From Rhodosorus marinus CCMP1338 (taxonomy: Eukaryota; Plantae; Rhodophyta): DNA of 64,000 nt. The notes beneath the pieces were generated by a model. It was not told the DNA's origin, did no database searches, and was given only the letters and a program-made list of their open reading frames with translations. Below, piece after piece: positions 16,101-58,800 of the stretch. The position numbers were made by a program, and so were the translations under genes. Location of the stretch: positions 1,240,001 to 1,304,000 of the forward strand of contig JAMWBK010000006.1 in the NCBI GenBank assembly GCA_029953675.1, written 5' to 3'. Numbering within the stretch: position 1 is the first letter of the stretch; every line of letters starts with the position of its first letter.

Positions 16101-18782
16101 CAGTACTGGAGAGGGGATATCCAGTAGATCCAAACGAAGTAGGGCCGAACCCGAGCAAGCGGGATCAAAAAGCCGCTGTAGACCGTGAACGCGATTACGA
16201 TGAAGTTGACGATGTTCAGCGCTCCTTGATCGGTGCTGAATAACGTGGATACCAGCCGCCCAATCAGGTCTAAGTTCGTCACGAGGGTGAGCATCATAAA
16301 GTAGAAGTACGCGAACCGCAGTCCACTACAGTCGAAGAAGAAATCACAGCGTAATCAGAATAACGGGTCCGGTTTTCACTCTCCGTCACTCGGGCATACT
16401 TTCAGAGGGAAGGACGAACGTACCTGTCTGCTAAATTTAACCCGACCATGAAGTAGACAATCGTTGAGAAGATGAACACTACCGGAAGGTTCAGGCTCCA
16501 TGCATCCACGATTCCAGCGAAATGGAAAGGTAGGGACTGGTAGTACCTCGCCTCCTTCTGCTTGAGGTATATCGGCAGGGAATAGAATGATTTGGCAACA
16601 ACAGTCGCAGTCGCTAGGGCGTTCGAAATAAAGCTCTGGGCGTGAGGACGACGTGTCGTAGGAACAGACTTGTGCAGAGCCACTTACAAATTGAATAGTA
16701 CACGGCCGCGAGGAAGAGTACACTTGCTCGAACAAAAGCTCCCGTAGCGTTGAGAGGGACTTGCAGGAACAGGGTTCCTACAATCAACGCGAGGATGACC
16801 TGAATGGTAACGGTGATGATGACTGTGGTTCGTTCCCAGGTCATCCTCGAAAACCTTTTCAGGAGCGTGACAAACTGTGCGCGTGAGTTCTGCAAGGAAT
16901 CGCGCCGCAGGACTTCCTTCATGCTTTCATCCAGGTCAACAATTTTCCCTGCACGGCCGCAGACGCCTTCTTCAAGCCGAGCTTCGATGTCTGCATAGAT
17001 TTCCGAGCTCTCATACTTCTCCACAAACTCGTCAACACTCTTCGGGATGTCGTTGATCCGTGCCGGATTAGCAACCGACTGGCTCATTCCTGGATCCGAC
17101 ACTGAGAGAATGAAGTCCGCAATAGATCTCGAAGCAGGTCTTTGAAATCCCAAGCTTTCAAAATAGCCTTCAATTTTCTCTGTCGGACCGAAGTAGATGC
17201 TCTTTCCTTGGTCCAGAAGGAGCACCTTAAACGTACGAATACACAATCCATTCGATCAGAGGGCGGCCATTTGCAAACAGTGCTAGCGGTCTGATCGTGA
17301 CGAAGAACTTGTTCTCTTACTTTGTCAAAGAGCTCAAAGGCGTCGTTTCCAAGCTGTTGCAGCGAAACGAACACGATTGCGTTGTACTGATGAGCGAAGT
17401 CTTGGATAGATCTGCATATGTCCAAAGTCGTCGCCGCGTCGAGCCCTTTGGATATGTTGTCCATGAAGAAAACCGAGCCCAGTGTACCACATATTGCTTC
17501 TGCAATGGTAACCCGCTTCCGTTCTCCTCCGGAAACACCTCGGAGAGACGCATCACCTACGGGGGTATCCAGAGTGTGCCCGATACCAAGAGCACGAGCG
17601 ACGACCTCTACCCGGTGCTGTCTTATCACCTCCGCGTAAGGAAGAAAGTCCGGAATTCCACACGAAGCTGCAAAAGCCAACGTCTGTCGTACCGTTAGCA
17701 TTGGATAATGCTGATCTTCCTGCTTAACTGCCTGAAGAGAGTGCTTGTAAAGCTGCATAATCTCTTTATCCCAGATGTTCTCTCCGTTGTACAGCACCTC
17801 CCCGTGAACGTCCTTGAAGAGTTCTGTCTTTCCTGAAACCAGGTTCATGAAAGAACTCGCGCCGCCTCCAGGCGGAGCCTGAATTAGGACAATCTCCCCT
17901 CCTTCAACGTAGCCGGACATGTTGCTGACCACCCGGTGCCAGTCCTCAGGTCTTTCCGTGCACGAGGCACGTCTAGCGGTGCTCATAACTGGCCGTTGAA
18001 AACTTGTCCAGACCGTATCGAACCCTGTAACCTCTTCAAGGGGGACCTCAGCAGATACCTGAGACTTTTCAATGTAATCAGCATATGGCAACACAAAGAA
18101 GGAGCTTAGAGAAAAACTTGGATCCCAGCTTACGTTTTTCCAAGAAATACTCAATCCACCGGGAGCTAAACCGATGAAATCATCGAAGATCCTGTCCTCC
18201 ATCTCCTGCCGCGCCTTCATATCGAAGGAGCCGCTCCATGGGTCCATCCTGGCGTCGTCATACCACCTTCCATACTTGGTCTCAATTTCCTCCTTGAAGC
18301 TATACAATTCGCGGTCCTTCTCAAGGCCGAGAAGGCTCCGGAACTTGTAATAGGCATTATGCAAAACGCCGTCCATCCCTTGAACAAAAGACACAGAAGC
18401 AGATTCAATGGGGAGAGAAAGCCGCAGTAAAGCTTCACTGGTTTGAACAAAAGCACTGTCATATTGATGCAGACAAACAAAATTCAATCTTTCTCCACTT
18501 CAGAGAAACAAGCCAGATCACGTCGCCACATATATACAAAACTCCCAAGAGGAGAGCGCGCAAGCCAAACTTCTATGAGCTCACCTTTCCGCAGAACTAC
18601 CACACCAAAGCTCGCTCGTCGTCGCCCTTTCTCTTCGATCGAAGTTGGGTACCACCCACCTGAAGAACTAAACCCACCGCCTGGAGGAGTAACCCTCTTT
18701 CATCCTGATCGAACAGGTGAATCACCTCATCTTTTTTTGCGGAAACCTCTGCGGCAGATGGTATCCTGCGGTCTTGTTCCAT
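13154..18782 (-). CDS. Full-size ABCG/PDR-type ABC transporter (NBD-TMD-NBD-TMD), multi-exon; 5' exons (18376-18782) uncertain
   Basis: NBD1: APPGGGASS, VSGGERKRVTIAE, MDNISKGLD. NBD2: GSSGAGKTTLMD, LSSDQRKRLTIAVELV, LFLDEPTSGLD, CTIHQP. PDR-type TMD motifs WIYWISPLQY and WIYWMNPSAY. Confidence 0.92.
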
Positions 18783-20500: not shown

Positions 20501-20784
20501 AAGCCCCCAACAGCTTCACCGCGTCGACCGCATACACGCAGTATAGGTTCACCCTCTACATCACGAGGAACCCATACACGGCGTCAGGTATGAGTTCGGG
20601 GCTGATCCGGCTCTCTCCTCGTCATCTCGTCTCGTGGGGAGAATCCTGTTCACCAGCCAAGCTCAGTGCGATCTCCTTGGCTTCATCGTACGTGCGAGGT
20701 CGACTGTAGTATACGAAATCGCGCTCCCGACCCGTCAATCCCGCTTTGAAGCGGTCTAACTGCGTCCGCGAGGTCGACTGTAGT

Positions 20785-23609
20785 CTACCTGACGAAAAGA
20801 AAGAGGGATTCTGCGATACCCTCCGAAAGGAGTTCCCGGATGTATTCAAGGAGGAGCTGCCATTGCCACCGGCAGAGCGGAAACAGTACGCGCTAAAGAT
20901 CCATCTCGAGGATGGGGCGAGTCCACCATCACAGCGACCGTACCCGATGTCGTTGGTAAACCGCGACAGACTAAGAAAAGAGCTAAAAGAGCTGGAGTGT
21001 CAGGGCTTCATATCACGCAGTCAAAGCCCATTCGCTGCACCGGTCTTATACGTGGATGAGAAGGACGGGGGAAGACGCCTGTGCGTAGACTACCGCCGGC
21101 TGAACAACATCACCATAAGGGAAAGGACGACTCCGCCAAGAGTCGAGGAGCTCATGGACACGTTGAGTAACGCCCGAGTGTTCACAACGTTAGATCTCAG
21201 GTCCGGCTACTTGCAACTTCCTGTTGACCCATCATCACGGGAAAAGACTGCGTTCACGACGTGCTTTGGACAGTACCAGTGGAATGTCATACCGTTTGGG
21301 TTGCAGAATGCACCCTCGGTGTTCATTCGCTACCTGACGGATGTGTTGCATGACCTTATCAACGAATGCGTGGTGTTGTACGTCGACGATATCCGGATTT
21401 ATTCGGCGACTGAGGAGGACCACGAGAAAGGTGTCCGACGGGTACTCCGACAACTAGAGCAGCATCAACTAGTCGTCAAACATTCGAAGTGCCAGTTCGG
21501 AGTACGCCAAGTATGCTACTTAGGTCAAAGCTTGGCGGGAGGCACTCGTCGTCCCGATCCAAAGAAGGTGGAGGCCATTCAGGGTTTTGCAGGCCCCAAC
21601 AACTTTCAGGGAAGTATGGGCGTTCATGGGCTTCGCAAATTTTCTACCGCGGTTTGTCCCTCGCTTTGCACAGGTGGCTGCACCACTGCACGCACTCACC
21701 AAGAAGAATCAGCAGTGGAAGTGGCACCAGGAGGAGCAACACGCCTTCAACGAAGTAAAACGGGCCATGTCGACCACCGCAACTCTGTATACGGTCGACC
21801 CGACGCTCCCTTTCATTGTTCAAGTGGATGCAAGTGACGCGGGTGTCGGCGGTGTTCTCTTTCAAACGCGGCAAGACCAGGAGGTGCCAGTGGCGTATAT
21901 GTCGCGAGCATTCAACGCAACGGAAAAGCGCTACAGCACCTACGAGAAAGAATTGTATGCCATCGTACTGGCAGTACAACAATGGTCCGTATACCTCAAC
22001 GGACAGCAGTTCAAGGTGCGTACGGACCATAATCCGTTGCGCTTTCTGCAGACGCAGAAGACGTTGACGCGACGACAAGCGCGATATGTCAACGTGCTAT
22101 TACCCTATTCCTTCACGATCCAGTATTTACGAGATAGTCTCAACATTGCGGACGCGGTAAGCCGTGATGCACTACGGGCCATCCGCGTCACATCAGATGC
22201 AGACTGGAGTCAAGACTACCGAGCCGACGCAGAGTTCTCCAAACAGTTTCAAACCCCTGCGCAATTTGAAGGATTTCAACGGAAAAAGGGCTTACTATTT
22301 CTACATGCAAGGCTTTGTGTACCCGGCAACCGCGTCGCCGAGGTCATTGATACGCACCATAAATCAGTGACGGCGGGTCATTTTGGGGCACGGGCCACGT
22401 ATCGAATACTACGCCGACGATACTACTGGCCAAGCCCGAGCCAGGATGTGCTCGCTCGGGTACGACAGTGCGAGGTATGTGCCCGCGAGCAACCGTTGAG
22501 ACGCCACCAGGGAGAGCTTCAACCGCTCCCAATCCCAGAGAAACGGGCAGTGGATTGGACCATGGATTTCATCACCGCGTTTGCCTCGATGAACGGTTAT
22601 GATGCAATAATGGTTGTAGTCGACCGTCTCACCAAATTTGCCGTTTTCATCCCGACTACAAAAACGGTGACGGCAGAAGAGGTGGCAGGTCTTGTTGTCA
22701 CACACATCATCTCCTTGTTCGGGTTACCCTGGAGCTTCGTCACAGATAGTGATAAGCTCTTCACCGCGACTTTCTGGCGACACCTTCTGCGATTGATGGG
22801 GGCTCAACAGCTGCTCTCTACCGCGTACCACCCCGAAACGGATGGACAGACGGAACGGGTCAATCAGACCCTACAAATTATGCTGTTGTACTAGTCCAAC
22901 ATGGATGGAGTGTCTACCCCTACTTCAGCTGGCCTACAACAACCATACGTCCGCCAGTACGGGATATCACCGTATTTTCTGTTAACCGGAGGGCATCCGC
23001 GTTTGAACTTGGACGTCTCAACCCCAACCCCGGCGACTACCAGCCTTGCCGACGCGGCGACTGCTTTCGTGAAGCGACAACAACAAATTCTTGCCGACGC
23101 ACGCAAGTACGTGGCCCTGGCGCAGGAGTTATATACTGACAACGCGAATTCACGGCGTCACACGAAGGTGTTCAACATTGGTGACAAGGTTTATTTGTCC
23201 ACGCGCAACCTCCCTCTGGAAGGCCCTATGCGGTTCAACCTCGCTGGTTGGGCCCCTTTCCAATTATCGAAAAACACTCGGACGTCGCGTACAGTTACCT
23301 AATGAAATGCTGGTACACCCGACATTTCATGTTTCCTTACTGAAGAGCGCACCGCCTGGGACAACTGAAACCCGACATATTCCTGTACGAACCAATCTAC
23401 ACCAGACGCAACCTGTGTTATCGGTATTGAGCGTGCGTACTGACGATGAAGGCACCCGCCAGTTTCTATGCTACCGCGAAAATGAATCGTGGACTGATGC
23501 TGTTTGGCTCCCTGAATACGACTATCCTACGGGCACCTTATCTGGACAACGCCTACGACACTACCTCAACTACCGAAGAATGCTCGATGCTCTTCCTGCA
23601 ACGTCTTAG
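20785..23609 (+). pseudogene. Gypsy pol (RT-RNase H-integrase-chromodomain); protease not visible
   Basis: RLCVDYRRLN, LDLRSGYLQ, PFGLQNAP, YVDD, VDASDAGVGGVL, TDHNPL, H..GHFG..CEVC, MDFI, TDSD, ETDGQTERVNQ, HPTFHVSLLK. Split over several ORFs. Confidence 0.92.
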
Positions 23610-27308: not shown

Positions 27309-30300
27309 TCATGGACTTGGCGTTGGCGTTGGCGTTGGCGTTGGCGTTGGGCTCGGCGTTGGCGTTGGGCTCGGTGTTGGCGTTGGGCTCGGCGTTGGCG
27401 TCAGCGTTGGGTTCCGGCTCGGCGTTGGCGTCAGCGTTGGCGTTGGCGTTGGCGTTGGCGTTGGGCTCGGCGTTGGCGTCAGCGTTGGGTTCCGGCTCGG
27501 CGTTGGCGTCAGCGTTGGCGTTGGGCTCGGCGTTGGCGTCAGCGTTGGGTTCCGGCTCGGCGTTGGCGTCAGCGTTTCCGTTGGCGTCAGCGTTGGCGTT
27601 GGGCTCGGCGTTGGGCTCGGCGTTGGGCTCGGCGTTGGCGTCAGCGTTGGGTTCCGGCTCGGCGTTGGCGTCAGCGTTGGCGTTGGCGTTGGCGTTGGCG
27701 TTGGGCTCGGCGTTGGCGTCAGCGTTGGGTTCCGGCTCGGCGTTGGCGTCAGCGTTGGCGTTGGCGTTGGCGTTGGCGTTGGGCTCGGCGTTGGCGTCAG
27801 CGTTGGGTTCCGGCTCGGCGTTGGCGTCAGCGTTGGCGTTGGGCTCGGCGTTGGGCTCGGCGTTGGCGTCAGCGTTGGCGTTGGCGTTAGCATTTCCGTT
27901 GGCGTTGGGCTCGGCGTTGGGCTCGGCGTCGGCGTTGGGCTCGGCGTTGGGCTCGGCGTTGGCGTCAGCGTTGGGTTCCGGCTCGGCGTTGGCGTTAGCA
28001 TTTCCGTTGGCGTTGGCGTTGGCGTTGGGCTCGGCGTTGGGCTCGGCGTTGGCGTCAGCGTTGGGTTCCGGCTCGGCGTTGGCGTTAGCATTTCCGTTGG
28101 CGTTGGGCTCGGCGTCGGCGTTGGGCTCGGCGTTGGCGTCAGCGTTGGGTTCCGGCTCGGCGTTGGCGTCAGCGTTGGCGTTGGGCTCGGCGTTGGCGTC
28201 AGCGTTGGGTTCCGGCTCGGCGTTGGCGTTAGCATTTCCGTTGGCGTTGGCGTTGGCGTTGGGCTCGGCGTTGGGCTCGGCGTTGGCGTCAGCGTTGGGT
28301 TCCGGCTCGGCGTTGGCGTTAGCATTTCCGTTGGCGTTGGGCTCGGCGTCGGCGTTGGGCTCGGCGTTGGCGTCAGCGTTGGGTTCCGGCTCGGCGTTGG
28401 CGTTAGCATTTCCGTTGGCGTTGGGCTCGGCGTCGGCGTTGGGCTCGGCGTTGGCGTCAGCGTTGGGTTCCGGCTCGGCGTTGGCGTTGGCGTTTGCGTT
28501 GGCGTTGGCGTTGGCGTTGGCGTTGGCGTTGGCGTTGGCGTTGGCGTTGGCGTTGGCGTTGGCGTTGGCGTTGGCGTTGGCGTTGGCGTTGGCGTTGGCG
28601 TTGGCGTTGGCGTTGGCGTTGGCGTTGGCGTTGGCGTTGGCGTTTGCGTTGGCGTTTGCGTTGGCGTTTGCGTTGGCGTTGGCGTTGGCGTTGGCGTTGG
28701 CGTTGGCGTTGGCGTTGGCGTTGGCGTTGGCGTTGGCGTTTGCGTTGGCGTTTGCGTTGGCGTTTGCGTTGGCGTTTGCGTTTGCGTTGGCGTTGGCGTT
28801 TGCGTTGGCGTTGGCGTTGGCGTTGGCGTTGGCGTTTGCGTTGGCGTTTGCGTTGGCGTTTGCGTTGGCGTTGGCGTTTGCGTTGGCGTTTGCGTTGGCG
28901 TTGGCGTTGGCGTTGGCGTTGGCGTTGGCGTTGGCGTTGGCGTTGGCGTTGGCGTTGGCGTTGGCGTTGGCGTTGGCGTTGGCGTTGGCGTTGGCGTTGG
29001 CGTTGGCGTTGGCGTTGGCGTTGGCGTTGGCGTTGGCGTTGGCGTTGGCGTTGGCGTTGGCGTTGGCGTCGGGCTCGGGCTCGGCGTTGGCGTTGGCGTT
29101 GGGCTTGGGCTCGGACTCTGACTCGGCGTCGGCGTCGGCGTAGGGCTCGGGCTTGGCGTTGCGGTTGGCGTTGCCGGGGAATCCGTTGGGAACGGAGTAA
29201 AATCCCACATGGGACCCCAAGTGGGCTCATGTGTGTAAGCCCAAGTGGGTGTCTCCATCGGTGTTTCTCCAGGGCCCAGTGTTGGCGTAATAGACGCGGA
29301 AGCGGTTGGCGTCTCACTCTCAGTCTCGGTCTCAGTCTCAGTCTCGGTCTCGGTCTCGGTCGGAGGCTGAGGCACCAAGGTCCCAGTCGGTGTCGGTATT
29401 GGTGTAGGGGTAGGAGGTTCTGGCGTCCTTATCGGCACGCGAGTGGGCGTTGGTGACGGAGTCGGACTCGGCGTTGGTGACGGAGTCGGACTCGGCGTTG
29501 GTGACGGGGTCGGACTCGGCGTTGGTGACGGGGTCGGACTCGGCGTTGGTGACGGGGTCGGACTCGGCGTTGGTGACGGGGTCGGACTCGGCGTTGGTAA
29601 CGGGGTCGGACTCGGCGATGGTGACGGGGTCGGGGGCACTAGGGTCGGGGTCGGCGGAGGAGGAGTTGGCTCTACCTCTGAGCCACACTGCAATCCAACC
29701 TGGCACCGCACAGACGCCTCGGAGAAGTATTGGGAACAATCATCCGCTCCCATCACCGGAAAAACATCTTCAACGACGCTGTCGTCTGATTTTAGCCGAG
29801 CCTCAGCGCGAGGGATCACGCAGATACTAGTGTTGCAGCAGTCGAAAGGACTACTGAATCTGTTTAGGCAGACGTAGACGCTTTTTTTCATCCATGGTCC
29901 ATCCGTTCGATCGACCTGGAAAGGTGAAGACCTCTCATCGCTACAATTTGCCCATGCTCCGGCCTCCAGACGAGTGAAGATCCACTCGTCGCTGAACATT
30001 TCAAACCGAAACCGAATACACCATTTGTTCGTGTATTCGATTTCCAAGCACACTTCTCCCACTGTGTCCCCTACACCCATCAGCTTGATGTCGTAACATT
30101 TCTTATTAGACGAGCCTCCCAAAGTTACAACCTCCTGGTTCGCCGCGTGGCTGGCACAAGTCTGTGGAACTGGAGTGGGCGTCGGGGTAGGCCCAATCCT
30201 CCCGTCGCACAGGAAAGCGACATCGCAACGAGCGAACACATCTCCTTGTTCTATCCTGCACTTCTTGCGTCCCAGTAGTGGATGTGCAGTTACGACCTGC

Positions 30301-35720: not shown

Positions 35721-36524
35721 CGGACCAGTCCGCTGTCCCCGATTGTTTCAGCTTGAGTTTGTGGAATATTCTTCGGAGAGGTGGTGGTACCTTTCCACTG
35801 TTCCTATGCTTCTGCGGCTTTCAAGCGGTGCGCTTTCGTTGTAATTCTGTTTGCGGCGCACTTCTCCGCAAAGAATCTTCCCTGAACTCTGTACGATTAT
35901 CGTGGTGGATCTGAGCAGGGCTCATCAGTATCCATGCTTCTGCGAAGATCCATCATGCCGATGTCACTGACTTGGTGCAAAGAACTTCGTGGGGTGGAGG
36001 TTTGCGCCATTTCTACAACAAGCTCCATGCAAAACAGAGCGTGTACTAATACTAAACACATTCATTCACTATCAAAGTTGAGTGGGCAAATGAATTCCCC
36101 ACCAGTCCGGGGAACATAGATGGGTACCCAAGCGGGCGGCACTCCCACCTGGAGGGGGACCACATAAAACACGAGCGCAAAAAAAGCGCAAAACAGTGTA
36201 AAAGGTGTAAAACGCTATATACAGTGGTTTCTTTCTTAAATCTTTTTGGGTTCACATCTGGAGTCTGAGGACAATGACCTACACAAACTACGTGAGGTTC
36301 CCCTGCTTTTGAGAACCCCTAAATGACTTATCTATTCTGAGCAGGCTTTTGGAGTGTTTTGGGATAACGTCTATACATAAATGGATGATTCTAGGGTCAG
36401 TCGACCTTAGATGCAATGGTAAAAAGTGCAAAAAATGCAAAAAAATGCAAAAAAGTGCGCAAAAGTGCAAAAATGTAAAAAGTGTAAAATTCTCAAGGGC
36501 CCCCTCCGCCGATTGTAGTTGACC

Positions 36525-36659
36525 CTCTGGCGCTCCAACGCTGCTTCGATGATCCGTTTATTCAGAGGCTAACTAACGCTGCTTCACTGTTGGACGCGCA
36601 CCATCAGCGTCTTGATTCTCGCTTCTCAGGGTAGTTAGGCTCTGAATAAACGGATCATC
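36525..36659 (+). mobile_element. Truncated subfamily A 3' end carrying an antisense 27-nt tail insertion
   Basis: ctctggcgctcc..cgcttctcagggtagttaggctctgaataaacggatcatc. Insert at 36548-36574 is flanked by AACGCTGCTTC at 36537-36547 and 36575-36585. Confidence 0.85.
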
Positions 36660-45912: not shown

Positions 45913-46138
45913 ATACTTACCTGGCCGGCTGATCGCTCCTCACGTAAGGGCATCTGCTTGGATGAGTGTGAGCATAGCACGTCACATTGTCTTTTCGGAC
46001 AACTGTGGCAGTCTCGCTTGACTCCTACGAAGTCACCTCTGTGTGACTGTCGACCGCTTAATTTCTGAGCATGGGGAGATTGATGATCCGTTTATTCAGA
46101 GGCTAACTGAGGAGATTCGCGTTCGCGCGACCTCCCCT
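45913..46138 (+). ncRNA. U1: U1 spliceosomal snRNA with an insertion in stem-loop IV (possibly pseudogenised)
   Basis: 5' ATACTTACCTGG; SL1 loop CTCACGTAA (U1-70K-like); SL2 loop with ATAGCAC (U1A-like); GTCGACCGCTTAATTTCTG (Sm site); SL4 GGGGAGATT..CGCG-TTCG-CGCG-ACCTCCCC, interrupted at 46082-46117. Confidence 0.88.
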
Positions 46139-48159
46139 AACTCCCCTGAACGGATCATCAATGAATTGTAGGTATTCAGGCACGTTAGGGATCAATAAAG
46201 AAAGGGCACCGGTTCTGGGGGAAAGTTGGGTGGAGTCCAATTTTGTGAACAAGAGAAGTGTAACTTAAGGCTTAATTTACACTTCCCTTCTTGTATTGCT
46301 GGGTTGACGCCCCATAGACGACAATCGGTAGTTCTAACAGGATTCTTCCAACATTTACACGTGTTCGCGCGGTGGCAACGGAAATTGCAGCGAGAGTGGC
46401 CCAAGCGGTACGCCTGGTTGCGGATCTCGTTGTGTCCGACCTAAATGCGCGTCGCAGTGAGTACATTCACCTCTCCATCCCTTGTCCTCAGGCGACCAGG
46501 TACCTGCCTGCGTCCGCTCGGCGTCGAGGAGCTGCAGCTCGGTGTATGCGGCATGTGAAAGAATCGCAGTTCGCGGCAGCGATGTCAAACCCTACTTTTC
46601 GCGATTCGGTGGTGACATATCCGTTTGTCCCCCTCATTATTGAATGCTTTGGCTTGATAGATAGTGTAGGTTCTCGCTGGCTGCGCGGTATCTTTCGCAA
46701 CGACCTAGGGCGTCTAGATAGTCTGCTCACGGAGCTTTCTTTGACCCTGTGGCGCTTAAATACTGCTTTATTTGTAGACGTCATCATCGTCTTATCTCTC
46801 GCTTCTCAGGGTAGTTAGGCTCTCAATGAACGTGATGTCCACGCTCAGCGCTACCTACGGGCTACCGTGCAACCGGCGAGTGGACTTTGGAAACCAGTCC
46901 GAGCCTGCTTATCATCCGGAACGTACGGGCTACAAAATCGAAGACTGGGGGAAACGGGGTCTCTAAGCATGATTTTTTCTTTTTTTGGGAAGCTTTGGGC
47001 CTGCGCGAGCAGATGCTTCTATACGTCGACTTGTGGGGTTGCGCATTCGTCCTATGTCACCCTGAAGATTTCCCGGGGTATGTTCGAAAGCGGGTTTTCC
47101 CGTGCCCTGGACCATCGCAATGTCCAACAACGGATAGGCCTTCATACAGGCGGTACACCGCGGCCAGAAGATTTCATTGTAGCACGGAAGATGAAGTCTC
47201 GCACACCAGGGGAAATCCATACGTCCGTTCCTTCAGAGCCTAACTACCCTGAGAAGCGAGAGACAAGACGATGATGACGCGCGTCTACAATCAAAGCAGC
47301 ATTTGAGCGCCACAGGGTCAAAGAAAGCTCCGTGAGCAGACCACCTAGACGGCCTGGGTCGTTGCGAAAGATACCTCGCAGCCAGCGAGAACCTACACTA
47401 TCTATCATGCCAAAGCATTCAATAATGAGGGGGACAAACGGATATGTCACCGCCGAATCGCGAATGGTAGGGTTTGACATCGCTGCCGCATACTGCGATT
47501 CTTTCACATGCCGCATAGACCGAGCTGCAGCTCCTCGACGCCGAGCGGACGCAGGCAGGTACCTGGTCGCCTGAGGACAAAATAATGGAGAGGTGAATGT
47601 ACTCACTGCGACGCGGTTTTGAGCGCAACATGCTCCTTTGTTGTTTAAAGCTTGGCTTTCATTACAGGGTATCGTGCTCGTCCACTTCGCCTTGCTCCTC
47701 TGTCGCAGCCCCGTCCTGCTGTTCCGTTGAAGATGCGCCCTCGTCCACGTTTTCAATGTCGTCAATTCCCTCCATCATTTTCGGGATCTCGTCAGGTCCT
47801 ATAACCGTAGGGATCCAATGCTCAAAGTTTAACAGAAAATCTCCGTAAATCATCTCTTTGAGAGGCTGAAAACGCAGAATGTTTCGGTAACGGTGGAGTG
47901 CTCCTCGTCGCCCGGACCTCCGAGAATAACCCTCATGAGGGACACGGGTTAGTTTGGCGATTCTGAGGCGAATGGCTGCTCGACCTATGAAACTTCTCTG
48001 GGTTTTCGTCGGATACGGAGTAAGTGTAAAAAGTTAGCATCGGGTTCCATTGCTGCGGGCCGGGGAGTGTGATTCCGCTCGCAACGCAGATCTTTGTTAG
48101 AGGAAGGGGCATGTCGGTTGTTATGTGTACCGGATCCACTGATGCCGTGGAACGCGTTG

Positions 48160-48416
48160 AGAATACAGACGTTGTACTCCAAATGTCCCGCCAGAGCCAT
48201 GATGAAGGAGGTCTTTCCATAACCAGGTGGCCCATGGAGCAAGTACCCACGCCGGAATGGAATACCCCTATCGACATAGCATTTTGCGCTTGATGAAAAC
48301 TCCGTGACGTCGTCGACGAGCTTCTGGGCAGTGGTTCCAGCCAACATTACAGAATTCAGAGGCCGCCTCCTCCGCGGATTCCCAAATACTTTCCACTCCG
48401 TCATCAGGGCGGTGTT
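48160..48416 (-). pseudogene. BCS1: Truncated BCS1-like mitochondrial AAA ATPase fragment
   Basis: [63 protein letters not shown]. No N-terminus, and Walker B and the second region of homology are not seen. Fused upstream to a CRE fragment. Confidence 0.85.
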
Positions 48417-49584
48417 CCCCTAGGCTAGAGAGGTCTGCGCCCACCAGTGTGCTCAAACGTCCCTCGCACGCTGATCGATGATCCGTTTATTCAGAGGCTA
48501 AGTACCCTGAGAAGCGAGAGACAAGACGCTGATGACGCGCGTACACAAACAGAGCAGAATTGGAGCGCCACAGGGTTAAAGAAAGCTCCGTGAGCAGACT
48601 ATCTACACGCCCTGGGTCGTTGCGAAACAGAGCTCGCAGCCAGCGAGAACCTTCACTGTCTATCAAGCCAAAGCCCTCAATGATGAGGGGAACGAACCGG
48701 TATGTCACCGCCGAATCGCAAAAGGTAGGGTTTGACATCGCTGCCGCGTACTGCGAAACTTTCACTTCCGCGTGGACCGAGCTGCAGCTCCTCGACGCCG
48801 AGCCACACGCTGATCAGCGCGAAGGGCTTCTAGCTTCACTTCCGCATGGACCGAGCTGCAGCTCCTCGACGCCGAGCCACACGCTGATCAGCGCGAAGGG
48901 CTAGCCAAGCCCCCCGCGTCGAAGGGAGCTGCCGCAGAAAATAGTTCAGGCGTTGACACGCACTGAACCTGAAGGCTCTGATAAACTGATGAACTCGCAG
49001 TGCCCACAGGGACACCGAATAGAATGAAGCCCTCGGGACGCCAAATGTCCGGGAACAGAGAGGGAACGGTACAAAATCTAGGACGCCACCTCGCCCAGAA
49101 GGGAGTACGCCTGCATCAGGAGTCCCGAGAAGGGTCACATCGTCATGGAAGGCGACGACGCGGACCCGCGGGAACTGATGCTGCACGCGCAACAGCGCCA
49201 ACTGCAATCCACATGCGTGCAGAAGAGCGCATGTGGATTGCAGTTGGCCCTTAGGGCCTTAGGGCAAAAAGGAAGACCCCTGCTGAACACCCGTCTGTGA
49301 CACAAAGCTCTGGCTGTTTACACCCAAGGTGACAAGGCGAGGGCAAGTTGGCCCCTCCCCGTAGACCCGGCGCACGAAACGGAAACCCGATGGGAAGAGC
49401 TGACGAACAACCTCGAGCGCGTGAACACGCGACACGCTGTTAAAGGCGTTCCCAAAATCAACCGAAAGTGTCCGAAAGGCTCCTCCCCGAGGCTGTCCAA
49501 CTGCATGATGCGAGTCACCAGTTCACAGCCGCCCGAATAGCCCACACGCACCTGGGTCAGGCCGAAAAATCCCCGCGCCTCATT

Positions 49585-51530
49585 GATGATCCGTTTATTC
49601 AGAGGCCAACTACGATCCGATTGTTCAGACGCTAACTACCCTGAAAAGCGAGAGACAAGACGCTGATGACGCGCATCCACAAACAAAGCAGAATTTCAGC
49701 GCCACAGGGTCAAAGAAAGCTCCGTGACCAGACTATCTAAACGCCCTGGGTCGTTGCGAAACAGAGCTCGCAGCCAGCGAGAACCTACACGATAGATATA
49801 TCAAGCCAAAGCGCTCAATAATGAGGGGGACGAACCGGTATGTCACCGTCGAATCGCGAAAGGTAGGGTTTGACATCGCTGCCGCGTACTGCGAATCTTT
49901 CACTTGCCGCATGGACCGAGCTGCAGCTCCTCGACGCCGAGCCGACGCAGGCAGGTACCTGGTCACCTGAGGACAAGGGATGGAGAGGTCAATGTACGCA
50001 CTACAACGCGCATCGAGGTCAGTCACAACGAGATCCGCCACCCGCTGTACCGCTGGGGCGTCACTCTCATCAGCGATTTCCGATGCCACCGCGAGAGCGA
50101 CCTCATACTCCACTTCTCGGTCCGTACCGAGCGATTGAGAACGAAGGTAGCGGAAAAGCAAGCGGTTGAGCCGCGTATGGCGTCTGGTCCGGGCCCCTTG
50201 AACCTCCGCACAAGACGCCAACACATGGGCACCATAATCACCCCACGGCACATTGGCCCCGCACAATGCGCGTCTAGAAAATCCCGCTCAACAGGCCAAG
50301 GGGGTTGCGGCAAACCCAGGTAAAGTCGTAAGCTTACACAAAGTTCGATATCGTTAATTGCCAACCGCGGATACGCAGGTATGACCGGGAAGAAACGGGA
50401 GCTGAGACTCCCCCCCAAACCGCGCAGGCGAGCCAAAGTCGACGCCGAGCACGAAGGTAAACTCAGAAGGGTGGCATACGAGTCCCGATGTATGTCCCAC
50501 GAAAGGGTTTTGTGGATTACATCGGTCCTCGAAGGGGCCGGACCGGACTGGGAAACGCCCTGCTCAGGCGGTCTCGACGGCACAGCCACGGCGTCAATAT
50601 CCTCGGCAGTTTCTACACCATTTCCAACAGACGGTGCTGCAGCAGAGACTCCCGAACGCTGGCCACCGAGGGAGTCAAGAACTGCCGCCCAGGAATCGCA
50701 CCGAGCCTGGGTACCACTCGGCAGGGCGTTACATTGTTGAAAAGCGGCCTCCAGTTCCGAAAAACCCCCCCCGAGCCGTGGGGCGAGAGTCCCGTCCAGC
50801 CGCCCAACCCGAAGTCCACTCAACAAACCACTCACATGCGGATCACACTCCGCAGACCATGTACTAAGCGCAGTGGCCCACGAACTCACCACAGCCGCCG
50901 GCTGGATCGACGCATAAGATCCCACAGCCAGCCCGCCCAACCGCACGGGCAACGCGATCTGCCGGTGAAGGACGTCCTTTTCTGCATCCCCCAAAACAGA
51001 TAGCTCAGCATCCATCAGCGTGCCGAGCACGTCCCTCGCTCGTCGGTCTGCGCGGAGCGCCAGCCAAGACCCCCACTCGGAGGGTAGCTGCCGCAAAAAG
51101 TACGTCAGCCTCTGGCACGCGCTGAACCGGAAGATGAGCAGAGCGGTCTGGAGGTACCCTTCTGGGAGAGTGCACGGCTCAGACAGGAGCTCAGCATGAT
51201 GACTCAGGAGCGCGGAGAGGCTGCGTTCAACAAATATCGGAGTGCCTAGGGGACACCGAACAGAAGGAAGCCCTCAGCTCGCCAAATATCTCGGAACCTG
51301 GATGGAACCGCGTCCGCGGTGCAGCGAGACCCCCCGCAGAAGTCGCACTTGGCATGGTTGATACGCAGCCCCCACCAAGGAAGCCACCTCGCCGAGAAAA
51401 TCGTAGGCCGGCACCAGATCGTCGGGAGTGCCAAGAAGCGTCACATCGTCATGGAAGGCGACCTCACGGACTCGCGGGACCTGATGTTTCAGCCGCAACA
51501 GCAGCAATCCACAGGCGTGCAGGAACAGCT
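49585..51530 (-). mobile_element. 5'-truncated CRE-like copy (RT C-terminus to 3' tail)
   Basis: ORFs 50023-51096 and 49733-50266; two stacked tails at about 49585-49640. Confidence 0.9.
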
Positions 51531-51544
51531 CTATGCATCCCTCC

Positions 51545-54500
51545 CGTAGACGCTTCCTCCGTCGTGAGCGAGCAGGATGTCTGAGTCTTTTAGGGAACAT
51601 TGCGAGCTTCCTGCTTTCTTTCCGAGCCCAGGGAGGACTGGCGCTCCCGCCTTTTCTCTTGCTTGGTTCGAAGGTTTTGTTGGGCGCTTTCCTCCTGGGG
51701 ATATCCCTCTTTGCCCTCGTTTGCCCCCAGTCTCTCTCCCTCATCGTTTGCGCAGGAGGGTTTCTTTTCTTTTGGATTTCCTGCTTATGGAGGTGGCCGA
51801 CCACCCTCAAGCAGCACTTGCTTGGAAGCTTTTGCTTGTTTTTCCTCGGCTAGTGCTCACGGTCTCCCAGGGGCACGATGCATGTCCAATTAGACGCAAA
51901 GTTCAGTCTTTTCTGGCGGGGGACTTTGCTTTCTTAGAATCTTTATACCTCGCTAGTGCCTCTTCTTCCTCTTCGTGGGGGACTTCACCTTTTTCTCGTT
52001 CCCGTAGGCAGGTACGGGCAAAGGTAGCAGTGGCACAGGGGGATATTCGGCGTGGGGCGGCCATCCTCCAGCAAGGCGCTTCAGTCGAGCCGTATCGCAC
52101 CGACCTGGCTGATCCAGTCACCGCGTTGTTCCCTGCGTGCGACGTGAGTTGGAACTCTGAGTTCCAGCGTGTCTTAGATGAATGCTTCGTAAAAATAGTA
52201 TGCTCAAAGTTGTTCAGCAATAACAAATTGTGTGGATAAGGGGGGGGTGAGTTTGGAGTGCTTCAGGTCGAACTCAAAACCTGACATCTCCTCTTCTGGG
52301 ATTCGTCATGGTAAGGCGTCATCCACAAAAATTTTCTTTCAGGCGATGAACTCCGGGAGCATATGCCCGTTGCGCTGGTCTTTTTGTCGATTCCTCACGC
52401 GGTAGGGGTCGGTTGCTTGTCCGGCCGGATGAGGTTCTGGCTCTGCTTAGGTCCGCCCCGAAAGGTCGTGCACTTGGTCCCTCAGGACTCCGGGTCGAAC
52501 TTTTTCACTGGTTGGGTGAAGAACGGCTGGACGCCCTTGCGCGGGTACTGGAGGGTCTTGTCAATGGGGACGATTTTTTCGTAGAGGCCTGGGCACTATT
52601 CTCGCGCTTCCAGCTGGTGGTCCTCTTGCCCAAGCCTGGACATTCAGACCAGACACCTTCGCTTCGGCCAATCGGGATGTGCGAAGCATTGCGGAAGCTG
52701 GCGAGCCGCTTTCTATCGCGTCAGCTCATTAGGGAGGCCAGGGGTTTTTCTTAGGTTGACCCATGTCGGTGTCGGCTATTCAGGTGGCTGTGAACTGGTG
52801 ACGCGTATACCTGCAGCTGGACGGTCTCCGCGATGAGCCCTTGGGCACGCTTTCTGTGGATTTCGCCAACGCGTTTAACAGTGTGTCTCGAGCACGCGCT
52901 TGAGGAAGTTCGTCAGCTTTTCCCCTCTGGCTTCCCGTTCTTACGCCGCGTATATGGTGAAGCGCCGAACGGGCCCCGATTTGTCACCTTGGGTGCCGAG
53001 AGCCACACCTTTGCGGCTCATACGGGTGTGCAGCAGGGCGATCCCTTAGGGCCGTTCCTGCACGCCCGTGGATTGCAACTGGTGCTGTTGCGGCTGAAAC
53101 ATCATCAGTTCCCGCGGGTCCGTGCGGTCGCCTTCCATGACGATGTGACGCTTCTTAGCACTCCCGACGATCTGGTGGGGGTCTACGATTTTCTCGGCGA
53201 GGTGGCTTCCTTGGTGGGGCTGCGTATCAACCACGCCAAGTGCGACTTCTGGGGGGGGGTCTCACTGCACCTTGGACGCGGTTCCATCCAGGTTCCGAGA
53301 TATTTGGCGAGCTGAGGGCTTCCTTCTGTTCGGTGTCCCCGTAGGCACTCCGATATTTGTTGAACGCAGCCTCTCCGCGCTCCTGAGTCATCATGATAAG
53401 CTCCTGACTGAGCTGTGCAGTCTTCCAGAAGGGTACCTCCAGATCGCTCTGCTCATCTTCCGGTTCAGCGCGTGCCATAGGCTGACCTACTTTTTGCGGC
53501 AGCTACCCTCCGAGTGCGGGTCTTGGCTGGCGCTCCGCGCAGACCGACGAGCGAGGGACGTGCTAGGCACGCTGGTGGATGCTGAGCTATCTGTTTTGGG
53601 GGATGCAGAAAAGGACGTCCTTCACCGGCAGATCGCGTTGCCCGTGCGGCTGGGCGGGCTGGGTGTGGGATCTTACGCGGGGATCTAGCCTGCGGCTGTG
53701 GTGAGTTCGTCGGCCAATGCGCTTAATACACGGTCTACGGAGTGTGATCCGCATGTGAGTGGTTTGTTGAGTGGATTTCGGGTTGGGCGCCTGGACGGGA
53801 CTCTCGCTCCACGGCTCGGGAGGGTTTTTGCGGAACTGGTGACCGTTTTTCAACAATGTAACGCCCTGCCGAGTGGTACCCAGGCTCATTGCGATTCCTG
53901 AGCGGCAGTTATTGACTCCCTCGGTGGCCAGCGCTCGGGAGTCTCTGCTACAGCACCGTGTGTTGGAAATGGTGTAGAAACTGCCGAGGATATTGACGCC
54001 GTGGCTGTGTCGTCGAGACCGCCAGAGCAGGGCGTTTCCCGGTCGGGTCCGGCCCCTTCGAGGACCGATGTAATCCAAAAAACCCTTTCGTGGGACATAC
54101 ATCGGGACTCGTATGCCACCCTTTTGAGTTTACCTTCGTGCTCGGCGTCGACTTTGGCTCGCCTGCGCGGTTTGGGGGTTAGTCACAGCTCCCGTTTCTT
54201 CACGGTCATACCTGCGTATCCGCGGTTGGCGCTTACCGATCTCGAACTTCGTGTAAGCTTACGACTTTACCTGGGCTTGCCGCAACCCCCCTGGCCTGTT
54301 GAGCGGGATTCTAGATGCGTATTGTGCGGGGCCAATGTACCGTGGGGTGATTATGGTGCGCATCTGTTGGCGTCTTGTGCGGAGGTTCAAGGGGCCCGGA
54401 CCAGACTCCATACGCGGCTCAACCGCTTGCTGTTCCGCTACGTTCGTTCTCAATCGCTCGATACGGACCGAGAAGAGGAGTATGAGGTCGCTTTGGCGGT

Positions 54501-54972
54501 GGCATCGGAGGTGGCTGATGAGAGTGACGCCCAGCGGTACAGCGGGTGGCGGATCTCGTTGTGACTGACCTCAATGCGCGTCGCAGTGAGTACATTGACC
54601 TCTCCATCCCTTGTCCTCAGGTGACCAGGTACCTGCCTGCGTCGGCTCGGCGTCGAGGAGCTGCAGCCCGGTCCATGCGGCAAGTGAAAAATTCGCAGTA
54701 CGCGGCAGCGATGTCAAACCCTACCTTTCGCGATTCGGCGGTGACATACCGGTTCGTCCCACTCATTATTGAGTGCGTTGGCTTGATAGATAGTGTAGGT
54801 TCTCGCTGGCTGCGAGCTCTGTTTCGCAACGACCCAGGGCGTTTAGATAGTCTGGTCACGGAGCTTTCTTTGACACTGTGGCGCTCCAATTCTGATTTGT
54901 TTTTTGAAGCGCGTCATCAGTGTCTTGTCTCTCGCTTCTCAGGGTAGTTAGCCTCTGAATAAACGGATCATC
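51545..54972 (+). mobile_element. Long CRE-like copy (pre-RT region to tail), frameshifted, with a foreign insert at about 52180-52379
   Basis: Colinear pre-RT, RT and RLE fragments ending VSRFSG*, followed by the 27-nt tail at 54946-54972. Confidence 0.9.
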
Positions 54973-54974
54973 AA

Positions 54975-55835
54975 CAGCCCTAAGGGATCGCCCTGCTGCA
55001 CACCCGTATGAGCCGCAAAGGTGTGGCTCTCGGCACCCAAGGTGACAAATCGGGGCCCGTTCGGCGCTTCACCATACGCGGCGTAAGAACGGGAAGCCAG
55101 AGGGGAAAAGCTGACGAGCTACCTCAAGCGCGTGTGCTCGAGGCACACTGTTAAACGCGTTGGCGAAATCCACAGAAAGCGTGCCCAAGGGCTCATCGCG
55201 GAGACCGTCCAGCTGCAGGTATACGCGTCACCAGTTCACAGCCACCTGAATAGCCGACACCGACATGGGTCAACCTAAGAAAAACCCCTGGCCTCCCTAA
55301 TGAGCTGACGCGATAGAAAGCGGCTCGCCAGCTTCCGCAATGCTTCGCACATCCCGATTGGCCGAAGCGAAGGTGTCTGGTCTGAATGTCCAGGCTTGGG
55401 CAAGAGGACCACCAGCTGGAAGCGCGAGAATAGTGCCCAGGCCTCTACGAAAAAATCGTCCCCATTGACAAGACCCTCCAGTACCCGCGCAAGGGCGTCC
55501 AGCCGTTCTTCACCCAACCAGTGAAAAAGTTCGACCCGGAGTCCTGAGGGACCAAGTGCACGACCTTTCGGGGCGGACCTAAGCAGAGCCAGAACCTCAT
55601 CCGGCCGGACAAGCAACCGACCCCTACCGCGTGAGGAATCGACAAAAGGATCTAAGACATGCTGGAACTCAGAGTTCCAACTCACGTCGCGCGCAGGGAA
55701 CAACGCGGTGACTGGATCAGCCAGGTCAGTGCGATACGGCTCGACTGAAGCGCCTTGCTGGAGGATGGCCGCCCAAGCCGAATATCCCCCTGTGCCACTG
55801 CTGCCTTTGCCCGTACCTGCCTACGGGAACGAGAA
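54975..55835 (-). mobile_element. Inverted duplicate of the 5' RT part of the 51545-54972 copy
   Basis: Shares the ttttcttaggttgacccatg and gtatacctgcagc variants with that copy but lacks the 52180-52379 insert. Confidence 0.85.
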
Positions 55836-58800
55836 GAGGGTAGTTAGCCTCTGAATAAACGGATCATCAAAAACGGGAAGAAGGTGAAGTCCCGCACGAA
55901 GAGGAAGTCATGGCCCGGACCAGACGCCAGACGCGGCTCAACCGCTTGCTGTTCCGCTACCTTCATTCTCAATCGCTCGGTACGGACCGAGAAGTGGAGT
56001 ATGAGGTCGCCCTGGCGGTGGCATCGGAGGTGGCTGATGAGAGTGACGCCCAGCGGTACAGCGGGTGGCGGATCTCGTTGTGACTGACCTCAATGCGCGT
56101 CGCAGTGAGTACATTGACCTCTCCATCCCTTGTCCTCAGGCGACCAGGTACCTGCCTGCGTCGGCTCGGCGTCGAGGAGCTGCAGCTCGGTCCATGCGGC
56201 AAGTGAAAGATTCGCAGTACGCGGCAGCGATGTCAAACCCTACCTTTCGCGATTCGGCAGTGACATACCGGTTCGTCCCCCTCATTATTGAGTGCTTTGG
56301 CTTGATAGACAGTGTAGGCTCTCGCTGGCTGCGAGCTCTGTTTCGCAACGACCCAGGGCGTTTAGATAGTCTGGTCACGGAGCTTTCTTTGACCCTGTGG
56401 CGCTCCAATTCTGCTTTGTTCGTGGACGCGCGTCATCAGCGTCTTGTCTCTCGCTTCTCAGGGTAGTTAGCCTCTGATCAAACGGTATGACCGTGAAAAA
56501 AAAAAAAAGAGGAAGAAGAGACACTAGCGAGGTATAAAGATTCTAAGAAAGCAAAGTCCCCCGCCAGAAAAGACTGAACTTTGCGTCTAATTGGACATGC
56601 CTCGCGCCCCTGGGAGACCGTGAGCACTAGCCGAGGAAAAACAAACAAAAGCTTCCAAGCAAGTGCTGCTTGAGGATGGTCGCCCACCAACCTCCATAAG
56701 CAGGAAATCCAAAAGATGCGCACCATAATCACCCCACGGCACATTTGGCCCGCACAACGCGCATCTGAATCCCGCTCAACAGGCCAAGGGGGTTGTGGCA
56801 AGCCCAGGTAAAGTCGTAAGCTTACACGAAGTTCGAGATCGGTAAGCGCCAACCGCGGATACGCAGGTATGACTGTGAAGAAACGGGAGCTGAGACTCCT
56901 CTCATTAGTGAGCTTGCGAGACAGAAAACGGCTCGCCAACCTGCGCAGGGTCTCGCACATCCCGATGGGCCGTAGGGATGGCGTCTGGCACGAATGCCCA
57001 GGCTTAGGCAGTAGCACCAGGTGCGACCGCGACAGTAGGGCCCATGCATCGTCGCAAAAATCGTCCCCATTTACAAGACCCTCCACCACTCGCGCAAGGG
57101 CGTCGAGGCCCTCCTCGCCCAACCAGTGCAAAAGCTCAACCCGGAGACGTGAGGGACCCGGCATGACCCTTCGGGGCGGACCCAAGAAGAGCCAAAACCT
57201 CTTCAGGCCGAACCAGCAACCTGCCCGTGTCAGTCGTGGAGGCGACATAAGGATCTAAGACGCGATTCGGCCTTGTCCTATCGGTTTGTTCCTCTCATCA
57301 TCGAGTGCTTTGGTTTAGTTGATTGTGTCGGCTCTCGCTGGCTTCGTGGGCTCTTTCGTCACAGCCCAAGTCGTCTTGCTAGCCTCCTCACGATGAACGG
57401 ATCATCATCGAGCTGTCCTTGACCTTATGGCGTTCCAACGCGGCTTTATTGTTCGACGCGCGTCATCAGCGTCTTGTTTCTTGCTTCTCAGGTAGTTAGG
57501 CTCTGATAAACTGATGATGATGAGGATCTAAGACACGCTGGAACGTAGGGTTCCAACTCGCGTCGTGCGCAGGAAACAACGCGGCAACTGTGTCAGCCAA
57601 GTCAGCTCAATAACGCTCGGCTGAAACGCGTTGCTGGAGAATGGCCGCCCCCCGCCGAATATCCCCCTGTGCCACTGCTGCTTTTGCCCTAGCCTGTCGA
57701 CGAGAACGAGAAGGAGGCGAAGTCGAACACAAAGAGAAAGTAGACACACTAGCAAGGTAGAAAGATTCCAGGAAAGCAAAGTCCCCTGCGAGAAAAGACT
57801 GGACTTTACGTCTAATGGGACAGGCATGGCGCCCCTGGGAGACAGTGAGCACTAGCCGAGGAAAAAGAAACAGGAGTTGCCAGGCAAGTGCATCCTGAGG
57901 GTGGTCGGCCACCTCCATCAGTAAAAAGTCCAAGAGAAATGACACCCGCCGGCGCAGCCGATGAGGAAGGCAAGCCGGAGGAGATTGAGAGCAAAGGGGG
58001 ATTTCCCCAGAGGGAAAACCAGCAACAAACCCCGAGAACCAAGAGAAAAGGCGAGAACGCCAGGCCTCGGAGCTACCGGAGCTGGGAAAAAAATCAGGGA
58101 GCTCGCAGTGATCCCGGAAGGACTCAGGCATCCTGCTCTTTCACCTCTGAGGAAGCGTCGACTGGATGTGAATCCGTAGGGGGAGCTGGGGAAGGCGCCC
58201 CTGCCACATGCGTCAAATGAGGACGCTTGGGCGGAGGACCACGCAAAGAAGTCAAGGAGGCGTAAACGTCCGCCAGAACCGCGGAAACCCGACCCCGAAC
58301 GCCAAATGGCGAGGGGGTACTAGGCTCGAGGGCGAGCGGATCCACCTCCGAATCCCCGCGAGCAAAATCCATGGCAGAAGGCTCAACCACAGCCAGAGGC
58401 TCTACGCACGCAGAGAGACGCCTCACTGGGAACACCTCAGCAAAATCAGGATGGGTCTCCAAAAGCGGAGTTTCAGAGACAAGGAAATCGTGGACAGCGG
58501 AGTGGAGAATGCCCCGAGTTGGAAGCCGGTCGCGCCGCTACCCGCCCGGTGCGGCCTTCGTCCTCCCAAGTGCTCCTTCGTGGGTCCGTTGAGGCCCGCG
58601 CGGGGGCCCTGGTAAGTACATTCCCTGCTGAGCCTGCCGTTGACTCTGTTCAACGGACCATATCTCCTCTCCGCTGGGTCTTGATGGCCAACGTGCGGCC
58701 CCAGCGCTCCTCGCGCTCCGGGGCCCGCATTCCTGTTCGCGATTTTCGTGACACGATGGCCTCGTGTCTCGGCGCGTCGCCCCGCGATTTTCTCTACGTT

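Follow-up and report, generated by a model that had tools for sequence, protein, structure and literature searches.

Our data support the view that four short insertions in the 64-kb window (the whole stretch of DNA that was analysed) are genuine retro-insertions of the 3' UTR alone of a non-LTR retrotransposon, flanked by target-site duplications (TSDs), and that their lengths form a class of their own at the stop codon of the element. These tail-only units are probably the products of target-primed reverse transcription (TPRT) that terminated early, with a preferred stop near a predicted hairpin at the stop codon, on templates longer than 27 nt and with occasional template switching. On present evidence they do not reveal a new kind of mobile element. 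The first of them, at 36.5 kb, is made up of the following features.

36548-36574, minus strand: tail-only unit #1, GATGATCCGTTTATTCAGAGGCTAACT, an exact match to the 3' end of the element
36537-36547: left TSD copy of unit #1, 11 bp, AACGCTGCTTC
36575-36585: right TSD copy of unit #1, 11 bp, AACGCTGCTTC, identical to the left copy at 11/11 positions
36518-36659, plus strand: copy S of the element, older and 5'-truncated, about 104 nt long once the insert is subtracted; its tail is the AGTTAGG variant

The order across 36537-36585 is AACGCTGCTTC, GATGATCCGTTTATTCAGAGGCTAACT, AACGCTGCTTC, and the unit is 27 nt long, or 28 if the adjacent A/T is included. It lies antisense within the tail of copy S, and the duplicated 11-mer is copy S sequence. 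The perfect 11-bp duplication around 36548-36574, to which a preliminary description of this DNA had drawn attention, was confirmed, and the same position is single in nine other copies of the element, which provide a paralogous empty site for unit #1. It should be noted here that copy S has a 27-nt tail of its own at 36633-36659, an inverted partner 58 nt downstream of unit #1 that the preliminary description overlooked. Twin priming was considered for this inverted pair and rejected, since it predicts a TSD enclosing the whole pair and at 36.5 kb the TSD encloses the 27-mer alone. The surroundings of unit #1 are hairpin-forming (GCGCTCCAAC...GTTGGACGCGC).

The reverse complement of the 27-mer forms the 3' end of a non-LTR retrotransposon of 3.44 kb, in agreement with its earlier identification as the complement of the ends of the long copies (54946-54972 and 61464-61490), counted from the stop codon. 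These ends belong to two copies.

51534-54972, plus strand: full-length copy A, 3439 bp, with ATG at 51577, TAG at 54944-46 and tail at 54946-54972
61464-61490, plus strand: tail of copy C, which spans 59930-61490, is full-length at the 5' end and has an internal deletion

Copy A is flanked by a 10-bp TSD, AACAGC(T/C)CTA (51524-33 / 54973-82), and has cut an older antisense copy into two parts, 49614-51533 and 54973-55907. When the window was mapped against the best copy, 46-64 kb was found to be a nest of element copies in both orientations. The 5' UTR of the element is about 43 nt, and three copies have an identical 5' end. With the reading frame closed by the TAG at 54944-46, which overlaps the first AG of the 27-mer, 26 nt are left as 3' UTR. 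It had also been stated that AATAAA lies inside the 27-mer and that no poly(A) follows the tail; both hold, the only AAA after a tail being that at 55869-71. Copy A carries a 199-nt insertion (52180-52378), without obvious duplication, which two other copies lack (GTCTTAGAT...CTTTTTGTCG). At 48761-48902 the 5' junction of a truncated copy, with 30 nt of its flank, lies within a tandem duplication of 74 nt (1.9 copies, 98% identity).

The reverse transcriptase (RT) was recognised by Pfam RVT_1 (E=2e-8 on one fragment) and by matches in PDB to L1 ORF2p (3e-12) and R2 (2e-10). Downstream of the RT a C...C...H...C motif precedes an RPD...D...K..Y...P..E..G region, and both are common to relatives from marine metagenomes. 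When 8-10 relatives were aligned with the element, no variation was seen at C, C, H, C, D, K and G and hardly any at RP...E. The C-terminal profile matches the CCHC motif and restriction-like endonuclease of R2 proteins (residues 990-1143, E=5e-8). On the strength of the RT and CCHC/endonuclease matches we class the element with the non-LTR retrotransposons of the restriction-like-endonuclease (R2-like) type. The N-terminal 220 amino acids, read from copies that are all frameshifted in the window (the ORF of copy A included), gave no Pfam match and no recognisable zinc-finger or Myb motif. Signs of TPRT are the precise 3' end, the many 5' end positions in copies longer than 100 nt (11 of 15 3' ends) and the TSD on copy A.

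Like the restriction-like-endonuclease retrotransposons R2, NeSL, CRE, R4, HERO and Utopia (PMC4640811), the element encodes RT, and after it CCHC and endonuclease, in one ORF, and has a precise 3' end without poly(A), variable 5' junctions and non-templated junction bases. It differs from them in its 9-14 bp TSDs, in UTRs of about 43 and 26 nt and in its choice of target. Site-specific insertion is typical of most, though not all, restriction-like-endonuclease lineages. The four targets identifiable here differ, so the element is apparently not site-specific. All that these targets have in common is a tendency to begin with AA, as three of the four duplications do.

It is highly improbable that the units are artefacts of assembly or adapter sequence, a constant target site or solo remnants of recombination. 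For an artefact there is nothing beyond the general risk of repeat-rich assemblies, and against it stand four independent loci with different duplications. The 27-mer lies inside the TSD of copy A and hence belongs to the element, not to its target; a constant target site was rejected on this ground and because the solo units carry their own TSDs. A solo-LTR-like origin was rejected as well, since the 5' ends of the three full-length copies lack the 27-mer, so that there are no terminal repeats to recombine.

The second unit has split a copy of the U1 snRNA.

46082-46108, minus strand: tail-only unit #2, 27 nt, exact, inside stem-loop 4 of the U1 snRNA copy
45913-46138, plus strand: U1 snRNA copy split by unit #2 (Rfam RF00003, E=2e-10)
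46137-46159, plus strand: sequence adjoining the U1 3' end, CCTAACTCCCCTG then AACGGATCATC

The identical 27-mer had already been placed in U1, and both the exact match and the U1 assignment were borne out. Unit #2 is flanked by GGGGAGATT / GAGGAGATT (46073-81 / 46109-17), identical at 8/9 positions, or alternatively by GGAGATT at 7/7. There is no junction microhomology, and the unit fits exactly 27 nt. The U1 copy runs from model position 1 to about 164, with positions 140-164 resuming past unit #2 at 46111-46135, and it falls under the Rfam gathering score because unit #2 splits stem-loop 4. At its 3' end, CCTAACTCCCCTG agrees at 12/13 positions with the antisense of element CAGGGTAGTTAGG, which comprises the end of the ORF and the start of the 27-mer, that is, hairpin arm and loop. 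The following AACGGATCATC at 46149-59 is an exact sense match to the last 11 nt of the element tail and ends the U1 unit.

We infer that 46137-46159 is a template-switch or snap-back remnant. In a snap-back the cDNA would copy through the terminal palindrome, fold back and prime itself, yielding ...CCTAACTACCCTGA then ACGGATCATC. Around U1 and the tail a weak TSD candidate alone was found, GAATACTA vs GAATTGTA, identical at 6/8 positions and offset by AAT. A single TSD enclosing both is not demonstrable, and therefore 45913-46159 may be a chimeric retrocopy of the U6/L1 kind or a gene struck twice. Chimeric retrocopies made by template switching have been described for U6/L1 in mammals (PMC4476161) and for MGL in Magnaporthe (PMC2104539), and SINEs with snRNA heads are template-switch chimeras (PMC4494074). 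The likeness to these lies in a complete U1 followed by a very short element 3' piece in the same orientation, and in the tail-to-tail arrangement of unit #3 (below). The U1 locus differs from them in the extra 13-nt antisense segment at the junction, which suggests a snap-back of the cDNA.

The remaining two units, and one shorter piece, lie within the nest.

49585-49611, minus strand: tail-only unit #3, 27-29 nt, one mismatch
55838-55871, plus strand: tail-only unit #4, consisting of GGGT, the 27-mer (55842-55868, exact) and AAA, antisense into the older copy DF
57393-57409, plus strand: 17-nt insertion ATGAACGGATCATCATC in an old copy, consisting of the last 14 nt of an older tail variant and ATC

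Unit #3, correctly reported earlier as a one-mismatch copy, directly adjoins the diverged tail of copy D (49611-49637), and a 5'-truncated old RT fragment follows the unit; the flanks of unit #3 show no identifiable TSD. For unit #4 the duplication can be drawn in two ways. In the first it is AACG(A/G)GAAGA (55828-37 / 55872-81), 10 bp with one mismatch, and the insert is GGGT, the 27-mer and AAA. In the second it is 14 bp with two mismatches, GGGT is read as target, and the insert is the 27-mer and AAA. Of the copy of about 31 nt that had been described at 55838-55868, the exact 27-mer thus stands and the length is ambiguous between 27 and 31 nt. The empty site of unit #4, ACCTTCTTCTCGTT, is present in three paralogous copies (A, C and G). 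Four nt upstream of the 27-mer, unit #4 has the G of the element, and the other TSD copy and all three paralogous sites have A. The template or cDNA therefore extended past 27 nt, at least there. No TSD was found for the insertion at 57393-57409. The exact 11-mer AACGGATCATC occurs twice more in the window, at 46149-59 and in the 57393-57409 insertion, about 0.03 occurrences being expected by chance.

The census from which the length class emerges consists of 15 element 3' ends in one 64-kb window, largely from a single nest of copies; the 17-nt internal insertion at 57393-57409 was counted apart. The 27-mer with up to three mismatches was found 9 times in the window and not at all in 100 window shuffles. 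Half-pattern scans, and scans allowing as many as eight mismatches, brought the total to 14 tail copies, and no additional older or degenerate solo copy was found in the window at up to eight mismatches. Further matches to the 27-mer, at 48477, 58830, 46813, 47219, 49611, 56465 and 57494, are the ends of longer copies. Identity to the current tail is 27/27, 27/27, 26/27 and 27/27 for the four tail-only units, and the lengths that their junctions allow are 27-28 nt for #1, 27 for #2, 27-29 for #3 and 27-31 for #4. In full, the lengths of the 3' ends are 11-13, 27-28, 27, 27-29, 27-31, about 104, 260, 329, 396, 470, 479, 580 and 3008 nt, one full length and one full length with deletions. Four of the 15 thus fall into the 5-nt bin of 27-31 nt and none between 32 and about 100 nt; the probability of at least four in that bin is about 8e-4 under a log-uniform length null. 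The preliminary description had named a peak of truncation lengths at exactly 27 nt as support for a discrete unit, and a smooth continuum as evidence against it. In the small sample of ends counted here there is such a peak, at 27-31 nt, and the length is not always exactly 27. The proposal that TPRT aborts reproducibly near the stop codon fits this cluster and the TSDs.

The duplications of the units are identical at 11/11, 8/9 and 9/10 positions and 9-14 bp long, and thus resemble the 10-bp TSD of copy A, so the same machinery made the tail-only units. This bears upon the idea that end joining sealed short abortive cDNAs or RNA fragments of the element into random DNA breaks, with no part played by its endonuclease. 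Such capture would account for the 57393-57409 piece without TSD and for unit #3, whose TSD is not identifiable. It is improbable, as three of the four units have TSDs of 9-14 bp like the 10 bp of their parent, and three of the four identified duplications begin with AA, as a staggered enzymatic cut would give. Microhomology at the junctions, summed over the four units, amounts to 6 nt (P=0.01); without unit #4 the value is P=0.10.

In the early-termination reading, the endonuclease would nick the target with a stagger of 9-14 bp, copying would start at the 3' terminal C of the RNA and end after 27-31 nt, and the short cDNA would then be joined to the upstream target end, sometimes through 1-3 nt of microhomology. 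The position of the stop may be related to a feature of the element RNA.

54938-54958, plus strand: small hairpin predicted in the RNA, its arms UCAGGG and CUCUGA enclosing the loop UAGUUAGC, which contains the stop codon

The last 34 nt of the element RNA are predicted to form this hairpin followed by 14 single-stranded nt up to the 3' end. It is predicted in three of three tail variants at -7 to -10 kcal/mol. On this predicted fold, the units of 27-31 nt would end at the junction of the loop and the 5' arm, and the pieces of 11-14 nt would have about the length of the 14-nt single-stranded run that precedes the stem. The enzyme could be stalling where the hairpin signal is held. Alternatively, the nascent cDNA could fold back on starting the second arm, by which its 3' end would be pulled off the template; such foldback would also explain the 11-14 nt pieces and the foldback-like remnant beside U1. 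Template switching is indicated by the tail-to-tail abutment of unit #3 and by the 11-mer after U1, preceded by the antisense segment with 12/13 matches. Counting against early termination are the weak hairpin, the small census and unit #2 with its lack of microhomology. The energy of the hairpin is not better than that of shuffled sequences (z -0.3 to -1.1), and folds of the last 100 and 193 nt are unremarkable (z 0.0 and 0.3), so that a strong structural block is not supported.

The other possibility raised in the preliminary description was a discrete 27-nt RNA mobilised in trans as a SINE-like unit. Here the 3' UTR would be severed at the stop codon, for example by cleavage in the hairpin loop or at the ribosomal A-site, and would then be copied in trans, right to its end, by the enzyme of the element. 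A length of exactly 27 nt would suit all four units, unit #2 carries no extra base of the element, unit #3 with its full tail against a full 27-mer resembles an end-to-end template jump, and the boundary falls within the predicted loop. Set against this are the element-derived base at -4 in unit #4, the junction microhomology (P=0.01) and the pieces of 11-14 nt, which a 27-nt RNA leaves unaccounted for. Moreover, no ribozyme, other Rfam family or tRNA-like structure was found at the tail; a processing signal of ribozyme or tRNA-like kind at the boundary was rejected, there being no Rfam match (gathering threshold or E<=10) and nothing from ARAGORN. The 27-mer by itself has no predicted structure, and no part of the tail is less conserved than the 3' half of the 27-mer. 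We consider such an RNA unlikely, and its particular form, a 27-nt RNA released by a cut in the stop-codon loop and copied end to end by the enzyme in trans, a little more so. If true, a 27-nt RNA copied in trans would be the smallest retroposed unit described and a natural read-out of the minimal template of an R2-like RT. The claim was accordingly not sustained, and neither was the suggestion that the 27-mer is the cis-signal recognised by the enzyme. Conservation among the copies is 95-97% at 16-60 nt from the end and 80% in the last 15 nt, the lowest bin of the tail, so any recognition signal would straddle the boundary of the 27-mer and not coincide with it.

The tail-only units are by-products, dead on arrival and not a self-propagating family. 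All four have the 3' tail in common with a partner LINE, as SINEs may have, and an own promoter or small-RNA head is lacking, the unit being a LINE tail of 27-31 nt with no tRNA or Rfam family attached. Among the four copies, a small sample, there are no private shared changes. They are not a SINE-like family, as they have no means of transcription of their own and show no sign of a separate lineage. SINEs of the stringent type, like UnaSINE1 of the eel with its partner UnaL2, carry the 3' tail of the partner LINE and are about 80-500 nt long. The likeness to them is that the mobilised sequence is the LINE 3' tail, where the enzyme starts; in contrast, the units here are 27 nt, without head, body, promoter or sign of a separate lineage, and most of what is conserved in the tail lies upstream of them. 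They also resemble the 5'-truncated 'dead on arrival' copies of L1 and R2, with which they have in common the colinear 3' end, parent-like TSDs, possible 5' microhomology and no coding capacity. They differ from those copies in being 27-31 nt long, confined to the 3' UTR and clustered in length, with none from 32 to about 100 nt in the window.

Units #1 and #2 lie outside the nest in palindromic sequence, and both are antisense and 40-85 nt upstream of another tail. Their placement is not explained by simple random insertion. The two sites hint at local re-targeting or at a preference of the endonuclease for structured DNA. In local re-targeting, an enzyme that remained on a new insertion, or was drawn to hairpin-forming DNA, would nick the opposite strand tens of bases upstream of a tail and start a second abortive copy, so that the micro-units would be coupled to another insertion event and not independent. 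This would modify early termination without excluding it. In its favour are the positions of units #1 and #2 upstream of the tail of copy S and of the U1-tail remnant, at palindromic sites, and the fact that copy S makes up only about 100 nt of some 46 kb of non-nest sequence. Such cases are two in number, and unit #4 and copy A were inserted far from any tail; we regard local re-targeting as doubtful at best.

A protein search gave no relative closer than about 30% amino-acid identity, and exact scans of metagenome, prokaryotic genome and viral contigs with the last 21 nt of the tail gave no match. In the closest related family (L001-L025, on marine metagenome contigs from JGI and ENA) the 3' UTR is about 60 nt long and contains, 21 nt past the stop codon of that family, the motif GTAGTTAGC that this element also has; the motif was absent from three of three more distant relatives tested. 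The tail of that family was defined from two loci and then scanned, which gave 17 family hits representing about 9 distinct loci. None of these roughly 9 tail-bearing loci was a solo tail, and the early stop is therefore not a general trait of the family. In most of its loci GTAGTTAGC is followed by a variable linker of 3-11 nt and then by an identical ATTCACACCCCACGAGATGAACCTGGTGAACAG, which means either that the family targets a repeat or that its true end is further downstream.

The early steps of TPRT are at present studied chiefly in vitro and with engineered R2. Should the cluster prove to be genome-wide, early-terminated units would be a natural record of the first steps of TPRT by an R2-like enzyme, showing where the copy starts, where it first fails, how the product is joined and when templates are switched. 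Fragments of 27 nt are ignored by repeat annotation, yet one of them has split a U1 snRNA copy here. Tail-only insertions may thus be an under-counted source of small insertions.

The window contains several other features. At 27317-29662 there is a degenerate hexamer array, (TTGGCG)n, of about 1.8 kb with 24-nt repeats, lying in a minus-strand open frame of 1172 codons; the region is rich in GC, strongly skewed between the strands and without a Pfam match. The pol region of a Ty3/gypsy-type LTR retrotransposon, with RT, RNase H and the zinc-binding and core domains of integrase, lies at 20746-22894. A gene for a transporter of ABCG/PDR type occupies 13203-18487 on the minus strand, its best match being an MMETSP transcript (77% identity), which suggests that the host is a marine protist. 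Among the retrotransposon copies, at 47985-48404 on the minus strand, there is a fragment of a BCS1-like AAA ATPase that comprises the Walker A region.
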